Positions 1 to 5,795 of a DNA stretch of 5,795 nt are shown piece after piece. Both the position numbers and the translations under genes were made by a program. How positions within the stretch are numbered: position 1 is the first letter of the stretch; each line of letters begins with the position of its first letter. Location: positions 1-5,795 of IMG/VR virus record IMGVR_UViG_3300026877_000103. The stretch is one strand, 5' to 3'. The notes under the pieces were generated by a model. The model made no database searches. It had not been told where the DNA came from and saw only the letters and a list, made by a program, of their open reading frames with translations.

Positions 1-1017
1 ACAATTAATGACCTCTATGGCAAGATAGTAGGTATTCACGGAAATAAATTGATAATGGAGGTACTTGATTTCAATAACGGTTTGGAGGATCTACGCAATC
101 ATACGTTAAGGTTCGTAGGAAACCCGCAGGAGAGAATAGATGAGGATCCGCTTAGGATACTGAGGGGGATAAGGTTTATCCTTTACGGCTATAAAATGCC
201 CCCAGACCAATTAGAAATTATGAAGAAGAATGTTGATAAGCTGGGTGGGTTACCTATAGAGAGAATAAGGGATGAGATACTGAAAATACTAAAGGTTAAC
301 CCTGCGGAGGGGTTTGAACTACTTGACGAGTTCGGTCTGTTAAAATATCTCTATGGAGAACATTACGAGGCATTAATGAATACCTATCACGATTACAGGG
401 GTTCACACCACGGTGAGAACGTCATAGAACATACATATGAGGCGTTAAAGAGACTTAGAAACCCAGACATTGAAACAATATTAGCAGTAATTTACCACGA
501 CGTGGGCAAACCTTATACTATGAGCGAAAAGAACGGAAAAATAATGTTCATAGGTCATGCTAATAAGAGTGCAGAAATTGCAAAAGAATTAATGAAGAGG
601 CTAAAGTTACCTAACAACCTAATAAAGGACGTTACTAACTTAATAGAAATGCATATGGACTTCAATCTAGCACAGAATAACGAGAAGAACCAGGCACAAT
701 TAATTACTAAGTTAATGCCGTTATATGATTGGAACCCTGAGAAAGTAAGAGAGATATATAATAAACTAATAGAGCTATCTCACGCGGATACAGGGAGTGA
801 GAATATACTCAACATGTCCAACAGGATAACAAAACCGATTGTAACAGGAGAAGACATAATAAACACTTTTGGTGTGAGCGGAAACATAGTGATGCATTTG
901 AAGGAGAGAGCATATACTCTGCAACTGCTAGGGTACGATAAAGACGAGATAATGAGGATGTTGAAGGGTGATAACAAATTATACGAGTTTAGGAAGCTGT
1001 TAGAAAATTGGAGCTGA
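1..1017 (+). CDS. cca: Class II CCA tRNA nucleotidyltransferase / poly(A) polymerase family protein with HD phosphohydrolase domain (5'-truncated by window edge)
   Basis: Frame 1 is open from base 1 (TINDLYGKIVGIHGNKLIMEVLDFNNGLEDL...). TIN matches the tail of the RRDFTIN motif, so the real start is upstream of the window. Class II motifs follow: DxxxGxxDL, LRFVGNPQERIDEDPLRILRGIRF (EDxxR template motif at 142-156) and ERIRDE. HD-domain residues: EHT, YHDVGKP (HD at 496-501), FIGHA, EMHM, HAD. The C-terminal PIVTGEDI is typical of these enzymes. Stop TGA at 1015-1017. CCA versus CC/A/poly(A) specificity cannot be settled without the N-terminus. Confidence 0.88.
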   Translation, partial: TINDLYGKIVGIHGNKLIMEVLDFNNGLEDLRNHTLRFVGNPQERIDEDPLRILRGIRFILYGYKMPPDQLEIMKKNVDKLGGLPIERIRDEILKILKVNPAEGFELLDEFGLLKYLYGEHYEALMNTYHDYRGSHHGENVIEHTYEALKRLRNPDIETILAVIYHDVGKPYTMSEKNGKIMFIGHANKSAEIAKELMKRLKLPNNLIKDVTNLIEMHMDFNLAQNNEKNQAQLITKLMPLYDWNPEKVREIYNKLIELSHADTGSENILNMSNRITKPIVTGEDIINTFGVSGNIVMHLKERAYTLQLLGYDKDEIMRMLKGDNKLYEFRKLLENWS

Positions 1018-1375: not shown

Positions 1376-1415
1376 TATCAAAAACTGGTATATAAACCTC
1401 AAACAGCTGTTTGTG
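1376..1415 (-). promoter_or_regulatory. Archaeal promoter of the 81-aa gene with palindromic operator-like site
   Basis: Minus strand: CACAAACAGCTGTTTGAG-G-TTTATATA-CCAGTTTTTGATA. A perfect 14-bp palindrome CAAACAGCTGTTTG (1400-1413) sits just upstream of the TATA box, over the BRE position. Confidence 0.6.
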
Positions 1416-1431
1416 AGAGCGGAATACGGGT

Positions 1432-1465
1432 CTGATCCCCCTGGGAGGGTGAGGTTTCCCGCTCA
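1432..1465 (-). mobile_element. Second, degenerate IS200/IS605-like end
   Basis: Minus strand TGAGCGGGAAACCTCACCCTCCCAGGGGGATCAG aligns with GAAGCGGAAAGCCTCGCCCTTCCAGGGCGGGGAGGAAGTCAG of the 1028-1085 element in the same orientation, with a deletion in the 3' hairpin arm/tail. It is a GC-rich island in AT-rich DNA. Confidence 0.5.
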
Positions 1466-2131
1466 TTAACTTCCATTTAAAACTACGGAAAATATCGTAG
1501 TGTTTTGTGCATATATAACTAGAGTATTATCACATATGTACGATTTTACTTCTCCACCATCATGTGCCACTATTATGCTTCCATTTATTGGGTAGTATAA
1601 TGTCTGTTCTATCAGTGCTGTTCCATTTATTGTGATTTTTCCTTTTTGCACTGTTATATGCCCGTTATATAGTATCTGCCAGCCGTATTCCGATACACCA
1701 TACGATGAGTTGTATATTACAGTAAAACTAGGATTTACGATAGGATATACCGTACCTGCAGGAGCGAATCCGCTTATAGATAAGACAGCAGTTTGAGTAC
1801 TGTACAGGTAGAATGTAATTACATAGGGAGAGTTTTGTGAAATGGCAACAGTAGGATCTGGTGCCGTAACGTTTACTATAACATATTCGTGCGGTTTTAG
1901 GATTATTATGTTTTGGTACCAACGATGACTGTTAATTACCGGCACCAATACATATGTTTTATTGGTAGGGTTTTGTATGCATATCGTTAGCACGTTGTAC
2001 TTATTTATTTCTCCTACGTCGTAGAAATCCAGTACCTTTGCATGCAATTGTGGTTGATAGAAAAAAATAGAAAACGTGAAAAGGGATGGTATTATAACTG
2101 CTAAAATTAGTATGATTTCAAACTTTTGCAT
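1466..2131 (-). CDS. Membrane-anchored, beta-rich exported protein, probable glycoprotein (221 aa)
   Basis: N-terminal hydrophobic anchor (IILILAVIIPSLFTFSIFFY). The rest is rich in V/I/Y/T/N, with seven N-X-S/T sequons (NKT, NVT, NSS, NGT, NGS, NTT and a terminal NGS). The start overlaps the upstream gene by 14 bp and has a GGATGA SD-like element. Confidence 0.8.
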   Translation of the reverse strand: MQKFEIILILAVIIPSLFTFSIFFYQPQLHAKVLDFYDVGEINKYNVLTICIQNPTNKTYVLVPVINSHRWYQNIIILKPHEYVIVNVTAPDPTVAISQNSPYVITFYLYSTQTAVLSISGFAPAGTVYPIVNPSFTVIYNSSYGVSEYGWQILYNGHITVQKGKITINGTALIEQTLYYPINGSIIVAHDGGEVKSYICDNTLVIYAQNTTIFSVVLNGS

Positions 2132-3167
2132 CTTTCATCATCCATACTGCATATTGTAATGCAAAATAAAATGTAAAATATCCCAAATCTCTAAAAGAGA
2201 ATATCCATATTAACGCCGGAAGACCCCAAGCTAATTCTTTCTTATTATTATATAGTAGGATTAATGCAAAAAGAGACACCTCAAGTACGGTATACACGAA
2301 CGAGGGGATAGGTAAGCCGAACGCAGTAAGGAGTGAAAACGAAACGCCCTGCTGTGCAACAGGTTGTGTAATAGTTATAACGGACGCAAGGTATTGCTTT
2401 GAAATGAAGGGTATTGATGAGAGCAGTAGCGGTAACGCGAATTCTATTATCTTTCTAAGTTTCTGTCTTTCAAATTTAATTAGAAGAATAGCTATCAGTA
2501 TCGCAAACTGCTTTACGTCTGCAGAGATTCCTAGGAGCAGGTATCTGAATCTCTCATTAAGTAGGGCAAGAAACGCAATAGAATATGCAAAAAGGTTCAG
2601 TTCTTGCCCTGTCGCAAAATCATATGAAAGTGCAGGAAATAGGAAAAAAGATGCGATGAAAGCGTTTTCGTGTCTTTTGAGGAAGGAATACGTAAAAGCT
2701 AAAACAGCTGTTATTACGTTTACTGTTTCAAGGTTATGCAAAACCGCAACGCTGATGAACGATAATGGGGGGTAAATATAGACGGTCGGCAGAAATGAGT
2801 TTGACGTAGTGCCGGTAACAACGTTATACGGAACGTGATATATGAAAAATGCTTTAGTCATTGAATAAAGGTACGGGTTTTTTCCGTCGAGGAATAAGTG
2901 TGACGCGTATAATATTGTTGCTTCTTCATCCGTTAGGATAGGTAATCCTGTGATTATATTCACCACAGCTGTAATAGTAGCAATAGCAAAAGCCGAAACA
3001 ATGAGTATTCTTTGCCTTACGAATATAGAGATCATGCCTAAAGCAACAACGAGAAATGCTGTAGGCAATAAATACGGTTTTCCGTCACCTAAAAACGCTG
3101 ATCCCATGCTAACTAAACCCAGCCCTGCCAAAAACCATGATATATTATCTTTCAATTTTTCTTCCAT
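2118..3167 (-). CDS. Polytopic membrane protein, GT-C fold glycosyltransferase-like (GT87/DUF2029-type) (349 aa)
   Basis: Many predicted TM segments. An acidic TDEE motif lies in the first large loop, followed by GKNPY, YIYPPLSF and a later VKQF. This motif order is characteristic of GT87-like lipid-phosphate-sugar-dependent transferases. CDS reality is highly likely, the family call is moderate. Confidence 0.68.
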   Translation of the reverse strand: MEEKLKDNISWFLAGLGLVSMGSAFLGDGKPYLLPTAFLVVALGMISIFVRQRILIVSAFAIATITAVVNIITGLPILTDEEATILYASHLFLDGKNPYLYSMTKAFFIYHVPYNVVTGTTSNSFLPTVYIYPPLSFISVAVLHNLETVNVITAVLAFTYSFLKRHENAFIASFFLFPALSYDFATGQELNLFAYSIAFLALLNERFRYLLLGISADVKQFAILIAILLIKFERQKLRKIIEFALPLLLSSIPFISKQYLASVITITQPVAQQGVSFSLLTAFGLPIPSFVYTVLEVSLFALILLYNNKKELAWGLPALIWIFSFRDLGYFTFYFALQYAVWMMKDAKV

Positions 3168-3176
3168 AACCGACGC

Positions 3177-3827
3177 CTACAACCTATCGGTACTTATGGG
3201 GGTAATGCCTAACGTCTGTGCTATTTCGAGTGGAGACAGCATTTCTACTCTCATTTTCGATGTGCTTACTCCTGCAACTTCCATGATACTCCTTTCAAAC
3301 GCTAACAAAAGTAACACTACTAGTTTATGTGCCTCATTGAGCTTAGCTATTATATCATCATAATTTGCATCGCTTGATATCAAACTATGAAGCTCTGAAA
3401 ACTTTTCAGACAATTCGTCAATGGAAAGACTTGAAAACCTATCCGTCAAAATCGATAATAAAATCTGGAAATTATCATCTACGTTATATGGGGTGCCGTA
3501 GAACTGCAGAGACCCGCTCTTAAGATCTTTTGTTAAAATCAATACGTAATTGTTTAGGATTTCTTGCACAGTTGTTATTTTGATGGCTTCTTTTTGGGTC
3601 ACCTGCCTTGTAGGGATTATAGCTTTTTCCCTGATTGCTTGCCTGACCAGGTTTGGGTCAACTTTTACAATATTTCTTCGTCCAAGTGGTGATAATTGAG
3701 GTTGTTGTTGGGTTTGTTGTATTTGTGGAAATAGTTGCGGTGGTGCAGGCGTTGCCGTGTTTGCAGGTATTTCATATGTGGGTTCTTGTTGCTGTTGTTG
3801 TTTTTTATTGGAGTTATTTAGGCTCAT
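3177..3827 (-). CDS. Hypothetical protein with Q/P-rich low-complexity N-terminus and helical C-terminal domain (216 aa)
   Basis: ATG lies 24 nt downstream of the TATA box TTTTTAAA (3852-3859, minus), a leaderless geometry. The stop is 9 nt before the next ATG, making it the first gene of the operon. The N-terminus contains KKQQQQQEP and QIQQTQQQPQ. Confidence 0.8.
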   Translation of the reverse strand: MSLNNSNKKQQQQQEPTYEIPANTATPAPPQLFPQIQQTQQQPQLSPLGRRNIVKVDPNLVRQAIREKAIIPTRQVTQKEAIKITTVQEILNNYVLILTKDLKSGSLQFYGTPYNVDDNFQILLSILTDRFSSLSIDELSEKFSELHSLISSDANYDDIIAKLNEAHKLVVLLLLAFERSIMEVAGVSTSKMRVEMLSPLEIAQTLGITPISTDRL

Positions 3828-3925
3828 GATAATTTCTTTCCCCAGAAGTCATTTAAAAAGCTGGTTTTAAGGCTCAAACAGATGTTTGAGGAAAATTTTT
3901 AAGTTTCTGATGTTAGATGTTTTTT
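3828..3925. promoter_or_regulatory. Divergent archaeal promoter pair with central palindrome
   Basis: Minus-strand TATA TTTTTAAA at 3852-3859. Plus-strand GAAAA-TTTTTAAG (purine-rich BRE plus TATA) at 3891-3903. The inverted repeat CTCAAACA-GA-TGTTTGAG at 3873-3890 lies between them. Confidence 0.68.
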
Positions 3926-5674
3926 ATGCAATTACAAGAACAAGAAAAGAACAGTGAGATTTTGTCGTCTTCTGCTGATGTTTCTACTATTGCAAGACGT
4001 TTGAAGGACGAGTTAGATAAATATGTTGTCGGAAATGAAGACGTCAAAACAGCTGTAATAACAGGACTTCTGACAGGGTTTCCTACCCTGCTCATCGGAG
4101 ACCCAGGGACTGCAAAAACGTATACTATCGAGATCTTATCAAAAATGATCGATGGGGTTAAACCAGAAGAGCTTTTTATAGTACTCGCTCACGAGGCAAT
4201 GACACCAGAAGACATTTTTGGAAATACAAACCTAAAAAAATTGAGAGAAGAAGGAGTACTAGAATATATTACTGAAGGCTTCTTGCCTTCTGCTAAATTA
4301 GTTTTCATAGATGAGATTTTCAAGAGCAACAAAGTCCTTGCCGAATCGCTGTTTAGAGCGATTAACGAAAAGAAGTTCAGAAATGGAAGTAAAGAGATCT
4401 CGTTACCATGGCTAGCGTTCTTTTCTGCGTCAAACGAGGTGAGGGTGAATACACAAGCGGACAGAGCATTCCTCGATAGGTTCAAGATATTCGCTACGGT
4501 TCTTTCGCCTAACTTGGAAGACATACAAGATCTCAAATCAACCGCGGAAAGGTATTATAAAGTTCTTACGGCAACTAAGCCTGCTTTCATCCCAATTGTA
4601 ACGAGTTATGACGAAGTTAAAAAAATACAGGATAAAATTCTTTCAGATTACTCCAAATACACAACACAAGATATTGTACTCGAAGCGGTGAAGCAGGCTA
4701 ACCTCATCCTGGGTGCAATAGCACAGGCTTTGCAAAACCCAAGAGCGTTTGGTGATTCCGGAATTGTAAGGTCGTACTTCAAATCGATGGGCGGATATCT
4801 GACAATCAGCGAGAGAAAATTCAAAAGTATAATGCAAGTCGCTAACGCGTTACGTGAAATGTTCGGCAATTCAACAATTACACCAGTGCATACTGCATTA
4901 GCGTTCTATCTTACAATTCCATTCACACCAGAGCTAAAGAATATAGTATCCCCTCTAGTCTCGTCATTGATCAAATCGTATTTCAACACAAATACATCGA
5001 ATAAGTCTTCTATTGATATTAATAGCTTGGTAAAAAGTATTTCCAAAACAGCAGAGAAAATCTTCACGGACGAAAACCTAAATAAGTTACTAGACGAAAC
5101 GTCGGCTTACGCTGTAGATGTTATTACTAAATCATTTCCAGCGTCGTCACCCGATTTAGCAAAAGATAGAGCAGATCTTGTTAAGAAATTTTTGGAGGTA
5201 ACAAATAGTACTGGTGACACACTGTATAAGTTGAATAATTTTATAAAAGCTGTAGGTACCTTAAACGATATTGCAACTAGGTACGCCAATAATATTAAAA
5301 TTAGGACTTTAGCACAGAAACTGCTTCAAAGTGTTGTATCTACTGTCTCTGACAAGATAGATATAGATCGTATAAAAGCTAATGCGATGACCGAGCTTGA
5401 TAAAACTTATAACAAGATAAAAGCTGAAATTGAAAGTAAATTTAACGAACTAATGAAACTAGGAGAGAGCGACGAGAACAGTAAACTCATCTCTGGGATA
5501 CAAAAATTCTTCCCGCAATTTTCTAACGCATTACCAGAAGCAGTGGTAAACCAAGAGCAAAAAGAAGTAATAATGAAGAGTCTTGACAATACTATAGGTG
5601 AAGTAAGGACTAAAATACTAGATTTCATAGACACATTAGAAAAAACTAAGAAGATACTTTCGCAAATTAAGTGA
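3926..5674 (+). CDS. MoxR-family (RavA-like) AAA+ ATPase with long helical C-terminal extension; resembles bicaudavirus ATPases of the ATV p618 type
   Basis: YVVGNEDV N-linker, Walker A GDPGTAKT (4097-4120), TPEDIFG, GFLPSA, Walker B LVFIDEIFK, sensor I SASNE, Arg finger AFLDRF and sensor II-like ISERK. The ORF track starts at 3917, but ATG 3926 is 22 nt after the TATA box and fits a leaderless start better (582 aa). Confidence 0.88.
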   Translation: MQLQEQEKNSEILSSSADVSTIARRLKDELDKYVVGNEDVKTAVITGLLTGFPTLLIGDPGTAKTYTIEILSKMIDGVKPEELFIVLAHEAMTPEDIFGNTNLKKLREEGVLEYITEGFLPSAKLVFIDEIFKSNKVLAESLFRAINEKKFRNGSKEISLPWLAFFSASNEVRVNTQADRAFLDRFKIFATVLSPNLEDIQDLKSTAERYYKVLTATKPAFIPIVTSYDEVKKIQDKILSDYSKYTTQDIVLEAVKQANLILGAIAQALQNPRAFGDSGIVRSYFKSMGGYLTISERKFKSIMQVANALREMFGNSTITPVHTALAFYLTIPFTPELKNIVSPLVSSLIKSYFNTNTSNKSSIDINSLVKSISKTAEKIFTDENLNKLLDETSAYAVDVITKSFPASSPDLAKDRADLVKKFLEVTNSTGDTLYKLNNFIKAVGTLNDIATRYANNIKIRTLAQKLLQSVVSTVSDKIDIDRIKANAMTELDKTYNKIKAEIESKFNELMKLGESDENSKLISGIQKFFPQFSNALPEAVVNQEQKEVIMKSLDNTIGEVRTKILDFIDTLEKTKKILSQIK

Positions 5675-5679
5675 GAGTT

Positions 5680-5795
5680 ATGCAAAGCTTCTTTAATAAT
5701 AATGAAGATGAAGAGAGACAACTAACAGAACTAACAGACACTATCTTTGAAACAGTGATAAAGGATTTAAAATCTAAGTCTCGTTATCTCACAAT
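5680..5795 (+). CDS. 5' end of downstream gene (partial), possibly the VWA-domain partner of the MoxR ATPase
   Basis: ATG 5 nt after the ATPase stop, with a GTGAG SD-like element overlapping that stop. The frame is open to the window end (MQSFFNNNEDEERQLTELTDTIFETVIKDLKSKSRYLT). VWA identity is inferred only from the usual MoxR-VWA pairing. Confidence 0.6.
   Translation, partial: MQSFFNNNEDEERQLTELTDTIFETVIKDLKSKSRYLT

Follow-up and report, generated by a model that had tools for sequence, protein, structure and literature searches.

A palindromic dyad at many promoters of the SMV1/SMV3/SMV4 virus lineage, a probable regulatory DNA site with position-dependent effect

Whether a palindrome that stands twice, nearly unchanged, in front of viral genes controls their transcription, whether it acts as DNA or as RNA and how far its reach extends are the questions raised by IMG/VR virus record IMGVR_UViG_3300026877_000103, a contig of 5795 bases analysed here over its whole length (the window). 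The two sites, copy 1 (CTCAAACAGCTGTTTGTG, 1398–1415) and copy 2 (CTCAAACAGATGTTTGAG, 3873–3890), are 18 base pairs (bp) long and belong to a dyad with the consensus CTCAAACA-NN-TGTTTGAG. As far as can be judged from sequence, this dyad is probably a cis-regulatory DNA site of many promoters in the lineage of the Sulfolobus monocaudaviruses SMV1, SMV3 and SMV4, and would be read by a two-fold-symmetric protein with an effect that depends on the position of the site. The window itself is, by its identity to these genomes (93% to SMV1, 89% to SMV4 and 83% to SMV3 over 1400–5795), a fragment of a virus of the same lineage, i.e. of the large tailed spindle viruses of the Sulfolobales.

The two copies share 16 of their 18 bases, the exceptions being positions 10 and 17; coordinates and match, already reported in the first-pass annotation, are borne out by direct reading. 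Copy 1 departs from the consensus by one mismatch (CAC instead of CTC in the distal arm), and copy 2, which lies between divergent promoters, has perfect arms around the centre GA. The pattern CTCAAACANNTGTTTGAG, allowed up to three mismatches, matches the window at these two places only; the chance expectation is 0.03 sites, and two sites occurred in none of 200 dinucleotide-preserving shuffles. The map of open reading frames (ORFs) confirms that the copies fall within the only two promoter-bearing gaps: copy 1 in the gap 1357–1465, upstream of the minus-strand gene of an 81-amino-acid acidic protein, the TATA centre of which is about 35 nucleotides (nt) before the ATG, and copy 2 in the gap 3828–3925, between the minus-strand gene of a 216-amino-acid protein and the plus-strand gene of a MoxR-type ATPase (table 1). 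Copy 1, ending 1 nt from the TATA box, does cover the position of the transcription factor B (TFB) recognition element (BRE), as had been proposed, and the suggestion that copy 2 also serves the ATPase promoter agrees with the presence of a plus-strand TATA box 4–5 nt away, the BRE position of which (3889–3894) overlaps or abuts the copy. Placement over the BRE is not, however, a general rule, about half of all sites of the dyad being found downstream of the TATA box.

Far more sites than these two exist. In whole records scanned at up to three mismatches, with the reversed pattern as control, 26 were counted in SMV1 (control 0), 29 in SMV4 (control 2) and 31 in SMV3 (control 3); SMV2 has 13 degenerate sites (control 1) and ATSV (Acidianus tailed spindle virus) four (control 1), and the same scan gave 0, 1 and 0 sites in ATV, STSV1 and STSV2, respectively. 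An unbiased count of palindromes with 6-mer arms in SMV1, SMV4 and SMV3 is headed by AAACAG/CTGTTT (12–14 exact copies) and AAACAT/ATGTTT (8–11), the maximum in Markov-shuffled genomes being 2–3, and the core ACAGCTGT is present in 22–33 copies versus about one expected. A scan of IMG/VR for exact matches returned 47 stretches, some 30 of which are SMV-like contigs (35–41% G+C), mostly with several sites, and none with the reversed control.

The sites are concentrated in the small part of these genomes that does not encode protein. According to the deposited annotation of SMV1, 15 of the 26 lie within the 12% of non-coding DNA. When a uniform ORF caller is applied, by which the genomes are 82–88% coding, and sites with at most two mismatches are considered, 11 of 14 sites in SMV1, 17 of 22 in SMV4 and 17 of 22 in SMV3 are non-coding (77–79%; binomial p = 4e-8, 5e-12 and 2e-9, respectively). 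Seen from the genes, SMV1 has 37 upstream gaps that measure at least 25 nt; a site is present in 14 of them and, within the conserved core (0.9–37 kb), in 12 of 18.

Each dyad consists of two 8-bp arms whose centres are 10 bp apart, i.e. one helical turn, the 2 bp in the middle being free. The symmetrized half-site matrix reads (in %) C67 T85 C65 A97 A98 A96 C99 A98, and the centres of 86 sites are CAGCTG (42), CATATG (25), CAGATG (10) and others (9). The arms of copy 2 are the same in 11 distinct orthologues at 15 of 16 positions, the remaining one deviating in SMV3 only; by contrast, the centre may be TC/GA, GG, CC or GC, and the adjoining bases drift. Across 13 distinct promoters orthologous to that of copy 1, 15 of the 18 positions are kept, AAACAG and the arm next to the TATA box never changing; only the three outermost bases of the distal arm vary. 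Dyad symmetry, a concentration at promoters beyond chance and arms conserved while their neighbours drift are the marks of an operator, and all three are found here.

Thus, the operator proposed in the first-pass annotation stands as far as symmetry, non-coding enrichment and conserved arms are concerned, and a motif scan across whole genomes and relatives, which it had put forward as a check, finds the sites enriched in non-coding promoter DNA, conserved in relatives and not randomly placed. Its scope is, instead, far wider than the local circuit of three transcription units that had been envisaged, since the 26–31 sites per genome in SMV1, SMV4 and SMV3 include promoters of virion-protein genes. 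One of the three units had been named a glycosylation operon, which finds no support because its three proteins have no Pfam match. The promoter module of about 35 bp said to be repeated at both places is weak as well: the alignment needs gaps (74% ungapped), the gapped score of 7 for the 35-bp extension is also attained by 7 out of 171 flanks belonging to other SMV1, SMV3 and SMV4 sites (two of these being copy-1 orthologues), and the CCAG of the extension is replaced by CTAG or CCGG in orthologues. The leftward extension is not a conserved unit and can mostly be put down to the A/T-richness of both promoter flanks (TATA box and T run).

When 112 distinct site contexts were oriented to the nearest start codon and their TATA boxes scored, two positional classes emerged. 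In the proximal class, the ATG is 3–21 nt past the dyad and the TATA box is 3–9 nt upstream or overlaps the outer arm (TTTAAACAG...), so that transcription, if it begins as usual some 26 nt from the TATA centre, would start at the 3' edge of the dyad; in SMV1, the genes of this class are those of the virion-protein half of the genome. In the distal class, to which both window copies belong, the ATG is 26–60 nt past the dyad and the TATA box 1–33 nt downstream, with modes at 1, 5 and 12–13 nt. Two loci of SMV1 deserve separate mention. Inside the annotated 5' end of a coat-protein-like gene (16772–17233) there is a perfect dyad (16861–16878) with its own TATA box, and 7 nt after it comes an ATG that SMV3, SMV4 and several contigs have likewise kept; the true start codon is probably about 115 nt downstream of the deposited one. 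In the gap 36797–36962, a dyad at 36840 lies between opposite-facing TATA boxes at distances of 10 and 12 nt, of which the one pointing right faces a short ORF (24 amino acids, longer in relatives) antisense to the end of the gene of a 65-amino-acid protein, an arrangement that may give a divergent or antisense transcript.

The layout of the dyad would fit a two-fold-symmetric dimer, or a dimer of dimers, on two successive major grooves, and a dimeric DNA-binding protein is proposed because of the symmetry, the spacing of the half-sites, the free spacer, the promoter location and the conservation taken together. A single regulator is favoured, its output being set by the position of the site. 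Archaeal repressors bind over or downstream of the TATA box, as stated for aCcr1 (PMC9976878), and proximal sites would be repressive, with the structural genes off whenever the regulator is bound, because the dyad there occupies the place of RNA polymerase, TFB and TFE (the argument made for aCcr1, PMC9976878). Where the site abuts the BRE/TATA region, i.e. at copy 1 (1 nt) and on the MoxR side of copy 2 (4–5 nt), the protein might either compete with TFB or substitute for a weak BRE; sites 10–13 nt upstream, such as copy 2 on the side of the 216-amino-acid protein gene, have an activator-like placement that could allow recruitment of TFB/TBP. Archaeal activators bind upstream of the BRE. Both the binding of a protein at the dyads and the sign of the regulation are what we infer from these arrangements.

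The same positions could also be read without any dedicated regulator, the dyad being a factor-independent core-promoter signature, either a virus-specific sequence of proximal-promoter or initiator type or a BRE substitute, that is recognized by the basal machinery of the host (TBP, TFB and RNA polymerase) or by a TFB paralogue. Indeed, the proximal-class dyad fills −17 to +1, the place of the A/T-rich proximal element and initiator, copy 1 fills that of the BRE, and dyads are found at strong-looking promoters of structural genes. Basal elements are, however, directional and fixed in position, and a BRE in particular is a directional purine/A-rich hexamer at a fixed distance upstream of the TATA box, whereas the dyad is symmetric, with both arms conserved, occurs on either side of the TATA box and has a variable spacing to it. 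Furthermore, its TATA-side arm, TTGAGG, does not resemble the purine/A-rich BRE of proximal-class promoters (e.g. CGAAAAG), and ATV, STSV1 and STSV2 are without the dyad, though STSV2 and SMV1 share a laboratory host (PMC9976878). A core-promoter signature is, in the light of these differences, considered unlikely.

A second alternative, according to which the palindrome works as RNA, forming a hairpin in the 5' leader or at the 3' end that affects translation, stability or termination, draws on the fact that it is a perfect inverted repeat, often only 3–13 nt from the start codon, and on a z of −3.9 for copy 2 with respect to shuffles. The stem comprises, however, only 5–7 A/U-rich pairs, with a predicted RNA free energy at 37 °C of −3.6 (copy 1) and −7.9 kcal/mol (copy 2), and would melt at the growth temperature of the host, the cultured relative SMV1 being grown in hosts kept at 75–78 °C (PMC9976878, PMC11065993). 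The dyad has no T-run after it, its arms show invariance instead of covariation and Rfam yields no match, so that neither a terminator nor a structured RNA can be recognized. In two culture transcriptomes with an SMV1-like virus, RNA contigs cover 1508–3819/3827 and about 3972–5795; those of the operon end at 3819–3827, where the ATG of the 216-amino-acid protein gene lies, and the stretch 3828–3971, copy 2 included, is without any RNA contig in the two runs. A metatranscriptome contig over the gene of the 81-amino-acid protein ends at about 1365–1374, and each copy of the window has its TATA boxes downstream. Such contigs are what divergent, nearly leaderless mRNAs and an untranscribed copy-2 dyad would give. 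Thus, most likely the dyad acts as DNA, because the contigs flank but miss copy 2 and the RNA hairpin is weak, and a role as RNA is judged very improbable.

The cis-regulatory DNA site favoured here calls for a binder, and we infer that this putative protein is encoded by the virus. The binder could instead be a transcription factor of the host that the virus exploits, the site functioning in the same way. No viral binder has been found, and the dyads of ATV and ATSV, which have Acidianus hosts, are related to that of the SMV viruses but shifted, with the same CANNTG centre, as might be expected of orthologous host factors. The dyad is, however, specific to lineages among the viruses, and STSV2, despite the laboratory host shared with SMV1 (PMC9976878), is without such sites; a host factor is considered less likely than a viral one.

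Several viral candidates were considered. Within the window, the 216-amino-acid protein might have been an autoregulated helix-turn-helix protein, its C-terminus looking the part by eye, but Pfam gives no match; the AlphaFold model (pLDDT 69) has a disordered N-terminus and a long helical hairpin with a low-confidence last helix, Foldseek finds nothing in the PDB below E = 0.5 and the ESM Atlas contains no usable match. In SMV1, a ribbon-helix-helix (RHH) protein encoded at 48050–48370 is the only confident DNA-binding protein confined to SMV1–4. It matches RHH_1 in its C-terminal half (1e-8) and, below threshold, in the N-terminal part in register (E = 0.018), so that it may be a tandem RHH protein with two units in one chain, as its domain matches suggest; comparison of the sequence with itself revealed nothing. 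Best annotated among the SMV-specific candidates, it was nevertheless set aside, since nothing ties it to the dyad. A miniature inverted-repeat transposable element (MITE) separates its gene from a degenerate upstream dyad (47708) in SMV1. An unannotated RHH ORF of SMV1 (41757–41960), common to ATSV and ATV, has the signature residues R2/K7/R27 of aCcr1 and probably reads the aCcr1-box, which differs from the dyad. SMV3 and ATV encode homologues of aCcr1, a protein whose 9-bp box, A(T/G)G(A)TA(G)A(T/G)TACN, has host cell-division genes, and not viral promoters, as its known targets (PMC9976878). The dyad was discarded as an aCcr1-box, its sequence (AAACA-NN-TGTTT) being different and both window copies standing upstream of the TATA box. 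The 65-amino-acid basic protein of SMV1 (36963–37160) is AbrB/SpoVT-like by eye and a weak candidate only, its model being beta-beta-alpha-beta-beta (pLDDT 66) with no fold, PDB sequence or Pfam match. Finally, gp37 of SMV2, a candidate binder put forward for that virus as a ‘leucine zipper’ (PMC11065993), was rejected, as it is largely hydrophobic and has no homologue in SMV1, SMV3, SMV4, ATSV, ATV or the window.

Some observations count against a regulatory site of the kind proposed. None of the window proteins contains a DNA-binding domain according to Pfam, the 216-amino-acid protein having been modelled as well. The spacing between dyad and TATA box varies from 0 to 33 nt, an unusual range if one stereospecific mechanism is at work. 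Some 20% of the good sites and several core-only sites are intragenic, with no special conservation there; the RNA evidence is made of assembled contigs, which give presence and not exact ends; and SMV1, which lacks the cassette, retains copy 1 with no gene next to it. As to cores within genes of the window, ACAGCTGT is found at 2704–2711, 2965–2972 and 4049–4056 and ACATATGT at 1532–1539 and 1950–1957; the whole 5.8 kb has seven dyad cores versus about 0.4 expected. The intragenic core-only copies are no more conserved than the coding sequence around them and, for this reason, are not counted as functional sites.

The case of SMV1 is also among the arguments for regarding the dyads mainly as points of recombination or cassette exchange (targets of a recombinase or dispersed microhomology), their location at promoters being secondary. 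The genome is mosaic: the left end of the window is ATSV-like, 1–1022 having 91.5% identity to the tRNA-nucleotidyltransferase/poly-A polymerase gene of ATSV, the remainder is SMV1-like, 1023–1399 is absent from SMV1, and the similarity to SMV1 begins at 1400, within copy 1. The gene of the 81-amino-acid protein is a variable cassette behind the copy-1 promoter (its orthologues are gp28/gp29 in SMV4 and gp36/gp37 in SMV3), and the first ORF behind orthologous promoters differs among contigs, being ATGAAAGTA, ATGTCTCAA or ATGGCTCAG, with the promoter itself kept. Most sites are, however, at syntenic promoters of conserved core genes that show no rearrangement, the fixed relation of the dyads to TATA boxes and start codons would be left unexplained, and mosaic junctions at shared promoter sequence are an expected by-product of dispersed repeats. 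Recombination as the main role is, therefore, improbable, although the dyads may double as junctions in a mosaic genome.

Related viruses have palindromes of their own. In ATV, AGAACA-NN-TGTTCT has 22 sites (control 3), 9 of them non-coding (p 5e-4), and ACAGCTGT occurs in 44 copies versus 0.9 expected; in ATSV, (TGAA)AACACA-NN-TGTGTT(TTCA) has 20 (control 6), 15 of which are non-coding (p 5e-8); GAATTGTCATGACAATTC has eight sites each in STSV1 (control 0, 7 non-coding) and STSV2 (control 1, 6 non-coding). The centre ACA-NN-TGT is common to the dyads of the SMV viruses, ATSV and ATV. A speculative extension of the regulatory reading, to which only limited credence is given, is that each lineage has its palindrome, read by a fast-evolving viral master regulator, and that position alone determines whether genes are kept off (structural) or are permitted or stimulated (non-structural). 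If true, a single factor would act as a temporal or carrier-state switch for the whole genome of an archaeal virus.

Comparable systems can be found among viruses and cells. The RHH regulators F55 of SSV1, SvtR of SIRV1 and AvtR of AFV6 are crenarchaeal viral proteins, small virus-encoded dimers that switch viral genes. Their operators are, like the dyad, short repeated or symmetric sites over the BRE/TATA region or the transcription start; they number, however, a handful per genome and have a known binder, whereas the dyad has 26–31 sites in two classes and an unrelated sequence. In the Thermococcales, SurR and TrmBL1/Tgr use one type of palindrome that activates upstream of the BRE/TATA region and represses downstream of it, a logic resembling that suggested by the two positional classes, although these are euryarchaeal cellular regulons with known winged helix-turn-helix or TrmB binders and no sequence link to the dyad. 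The likeness of the centres CAGCTG, CATATG, CAGATG and CACCTG to the eukaryotic E-box (CANNTG) of basic helix-loop-helix proteins is superficial, as the central two bases of the dyad are variable, specificity resides in the AAACA arms and no protein of this kind was found.

Closer to the present case, virus-specific regulatory sequences around a strong BRE/TATA region, shared by several anti-defence genes of one genome, have been described, as have inverted repeats overlapping the BRE in SMV2, for which the authors proposed a repressor site (PMC11065993). The TATA box of copy 1, TTTATATA, is that of the strong-promoter consensus of the same study, the sets of which are small groups of early single genes, whereas the dyad also marks promoters of structural genes. 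Copy 1 has, then, a strong-type TATA box in front of a variable small acidic protein, the SMV3 and SMV4 orthologues of which are outside the published lists of anti-defence genes; an initial equation of the cassette with SMV4 gp40/SMV3 gp46–48, which are on these lists, was wrong. No description of the dyad was found in the literature searched, the original genome papers of the SMV viruses being outside that search.

How the large spindle-shaped viruses of the Sulfolobales programme their transcription is essentially unmapped, and functions have been assigned to only a minority of their genes. In this context, the position of the dyad allows genes to be placed in one of two regulatory classes from sequence alone, and the site may be used as a bait for the regulator, for promoter prediction and for the correction of start codons, as in the coat-protein-like gene of SMV1 and the MoxR gene. 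Should the position-dependent model be true, it would amount to a compact temporal control of a whole genome, and the variants of the different lineages to a natural series for studying the co-evolution of regulator and site.

Table 1. Genes, TATA boxes and stem of the window, with coordinates and strand.
Feature	Position	Strand	Remarks
Nucleotidyltransferase/HD protein gene	1–1017	+	
81-amino-acid acidic, Cys-containing protein gene	1111–1356	−	PHROG 17634, function unknown
TATA box TTTATATA of the 81-amino-acid protein gene promoter	1389–1396	−	1 nt from copy 1; kept in 13 orthologues
GC-rich stem GAGCGGAA...TTCCCGCTC	1417–1465		Between operon stop and copy 1
Three-gene operon (221 amino acids, 349-amino-acid membrane protein, 216 amino acids)	1466–3827	−	One RNA contig covers 1508–3819
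TATA box TTTTTAAA of the operon of the 216-amino-acid protein gene	3852–3859	−	13 nt from copy 2; conserved
TATA box ATTTTTAA of the MoxR promoter	3895–3902	+	Conserved in orthologues
MoxR-type AAA+ ATPase gene	3917–5674	+	Pfam bpMoxR 1.8e-31, AAA_5 4.5e-19

As to the other features of the window, the PHROGs of the three operon proteins are of unknown function or labelled ‘membrane protein’. The MoxR gene is followed by the beginning of the next gene. Its longest ORF is that of table 1, but relatives keep the start ATGCAATTA at 3926 and the upstream ATG is out of frame in SMV4; the true start is, on this comparison, probably 3926, and its distance of about 27 nt from the TATA centre suggests a leaderless mRNA. 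A tRNA scan of the window found none, and the sole Rfam match was a sub-threshold HgcC (E = 0.19). An RNA contig of metatranscriptome run X19, matching from about 3779, has a loose end, ACTTTCAATTCTATAGTAGATTAGC, that resembles a clustered regularly interspaced short palindromic repeat (CRISPR) of the Sulfolobales and hints at a spacer of the host directed at the 5' end region of the gene of the 216-amino-acid protein; the exact repeat had no match in the genome collection.

Within the copy-1 promoter of one metagenomic relative (L070, about 13516–13610), TTTATACCAGTTTTT is tandemly duplicated between dyad and ATG, with two TATA-like boxes. On the other side of copy 1, the GC-rich stem is likely to be a 3'-end element of the three-gene operon. 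Its halves are split by a MITE (SMN2) in SMV1 and by about 130 other bases in SMV4, and from its counterparts in relatives (L001 3010–3410, L002 3067–3275) the loop appears to tolerate or attract insertions, the left half, GAGAGCGGAATACGGGTCTGA, being conserved and remaining joined to the palindrome. A second GC-rich hairpin, the repeat TCTGACTTCCTCCCCGCCCT-loop-AGGGCGAGGCTT at 1025–1096 (core 1041–1056), occupies the convergent gap past the acidic protein gene and may either form a terminator-type structure at 3' ends or mark where a mobile element ends. In two metatranscriptomes its depth is hundreds to thousands of times that of its surroundings, with many different flanks, and SMV1 has at least five copies, mostly just beyond gene ends, two of which bracket an IS200/605 element.

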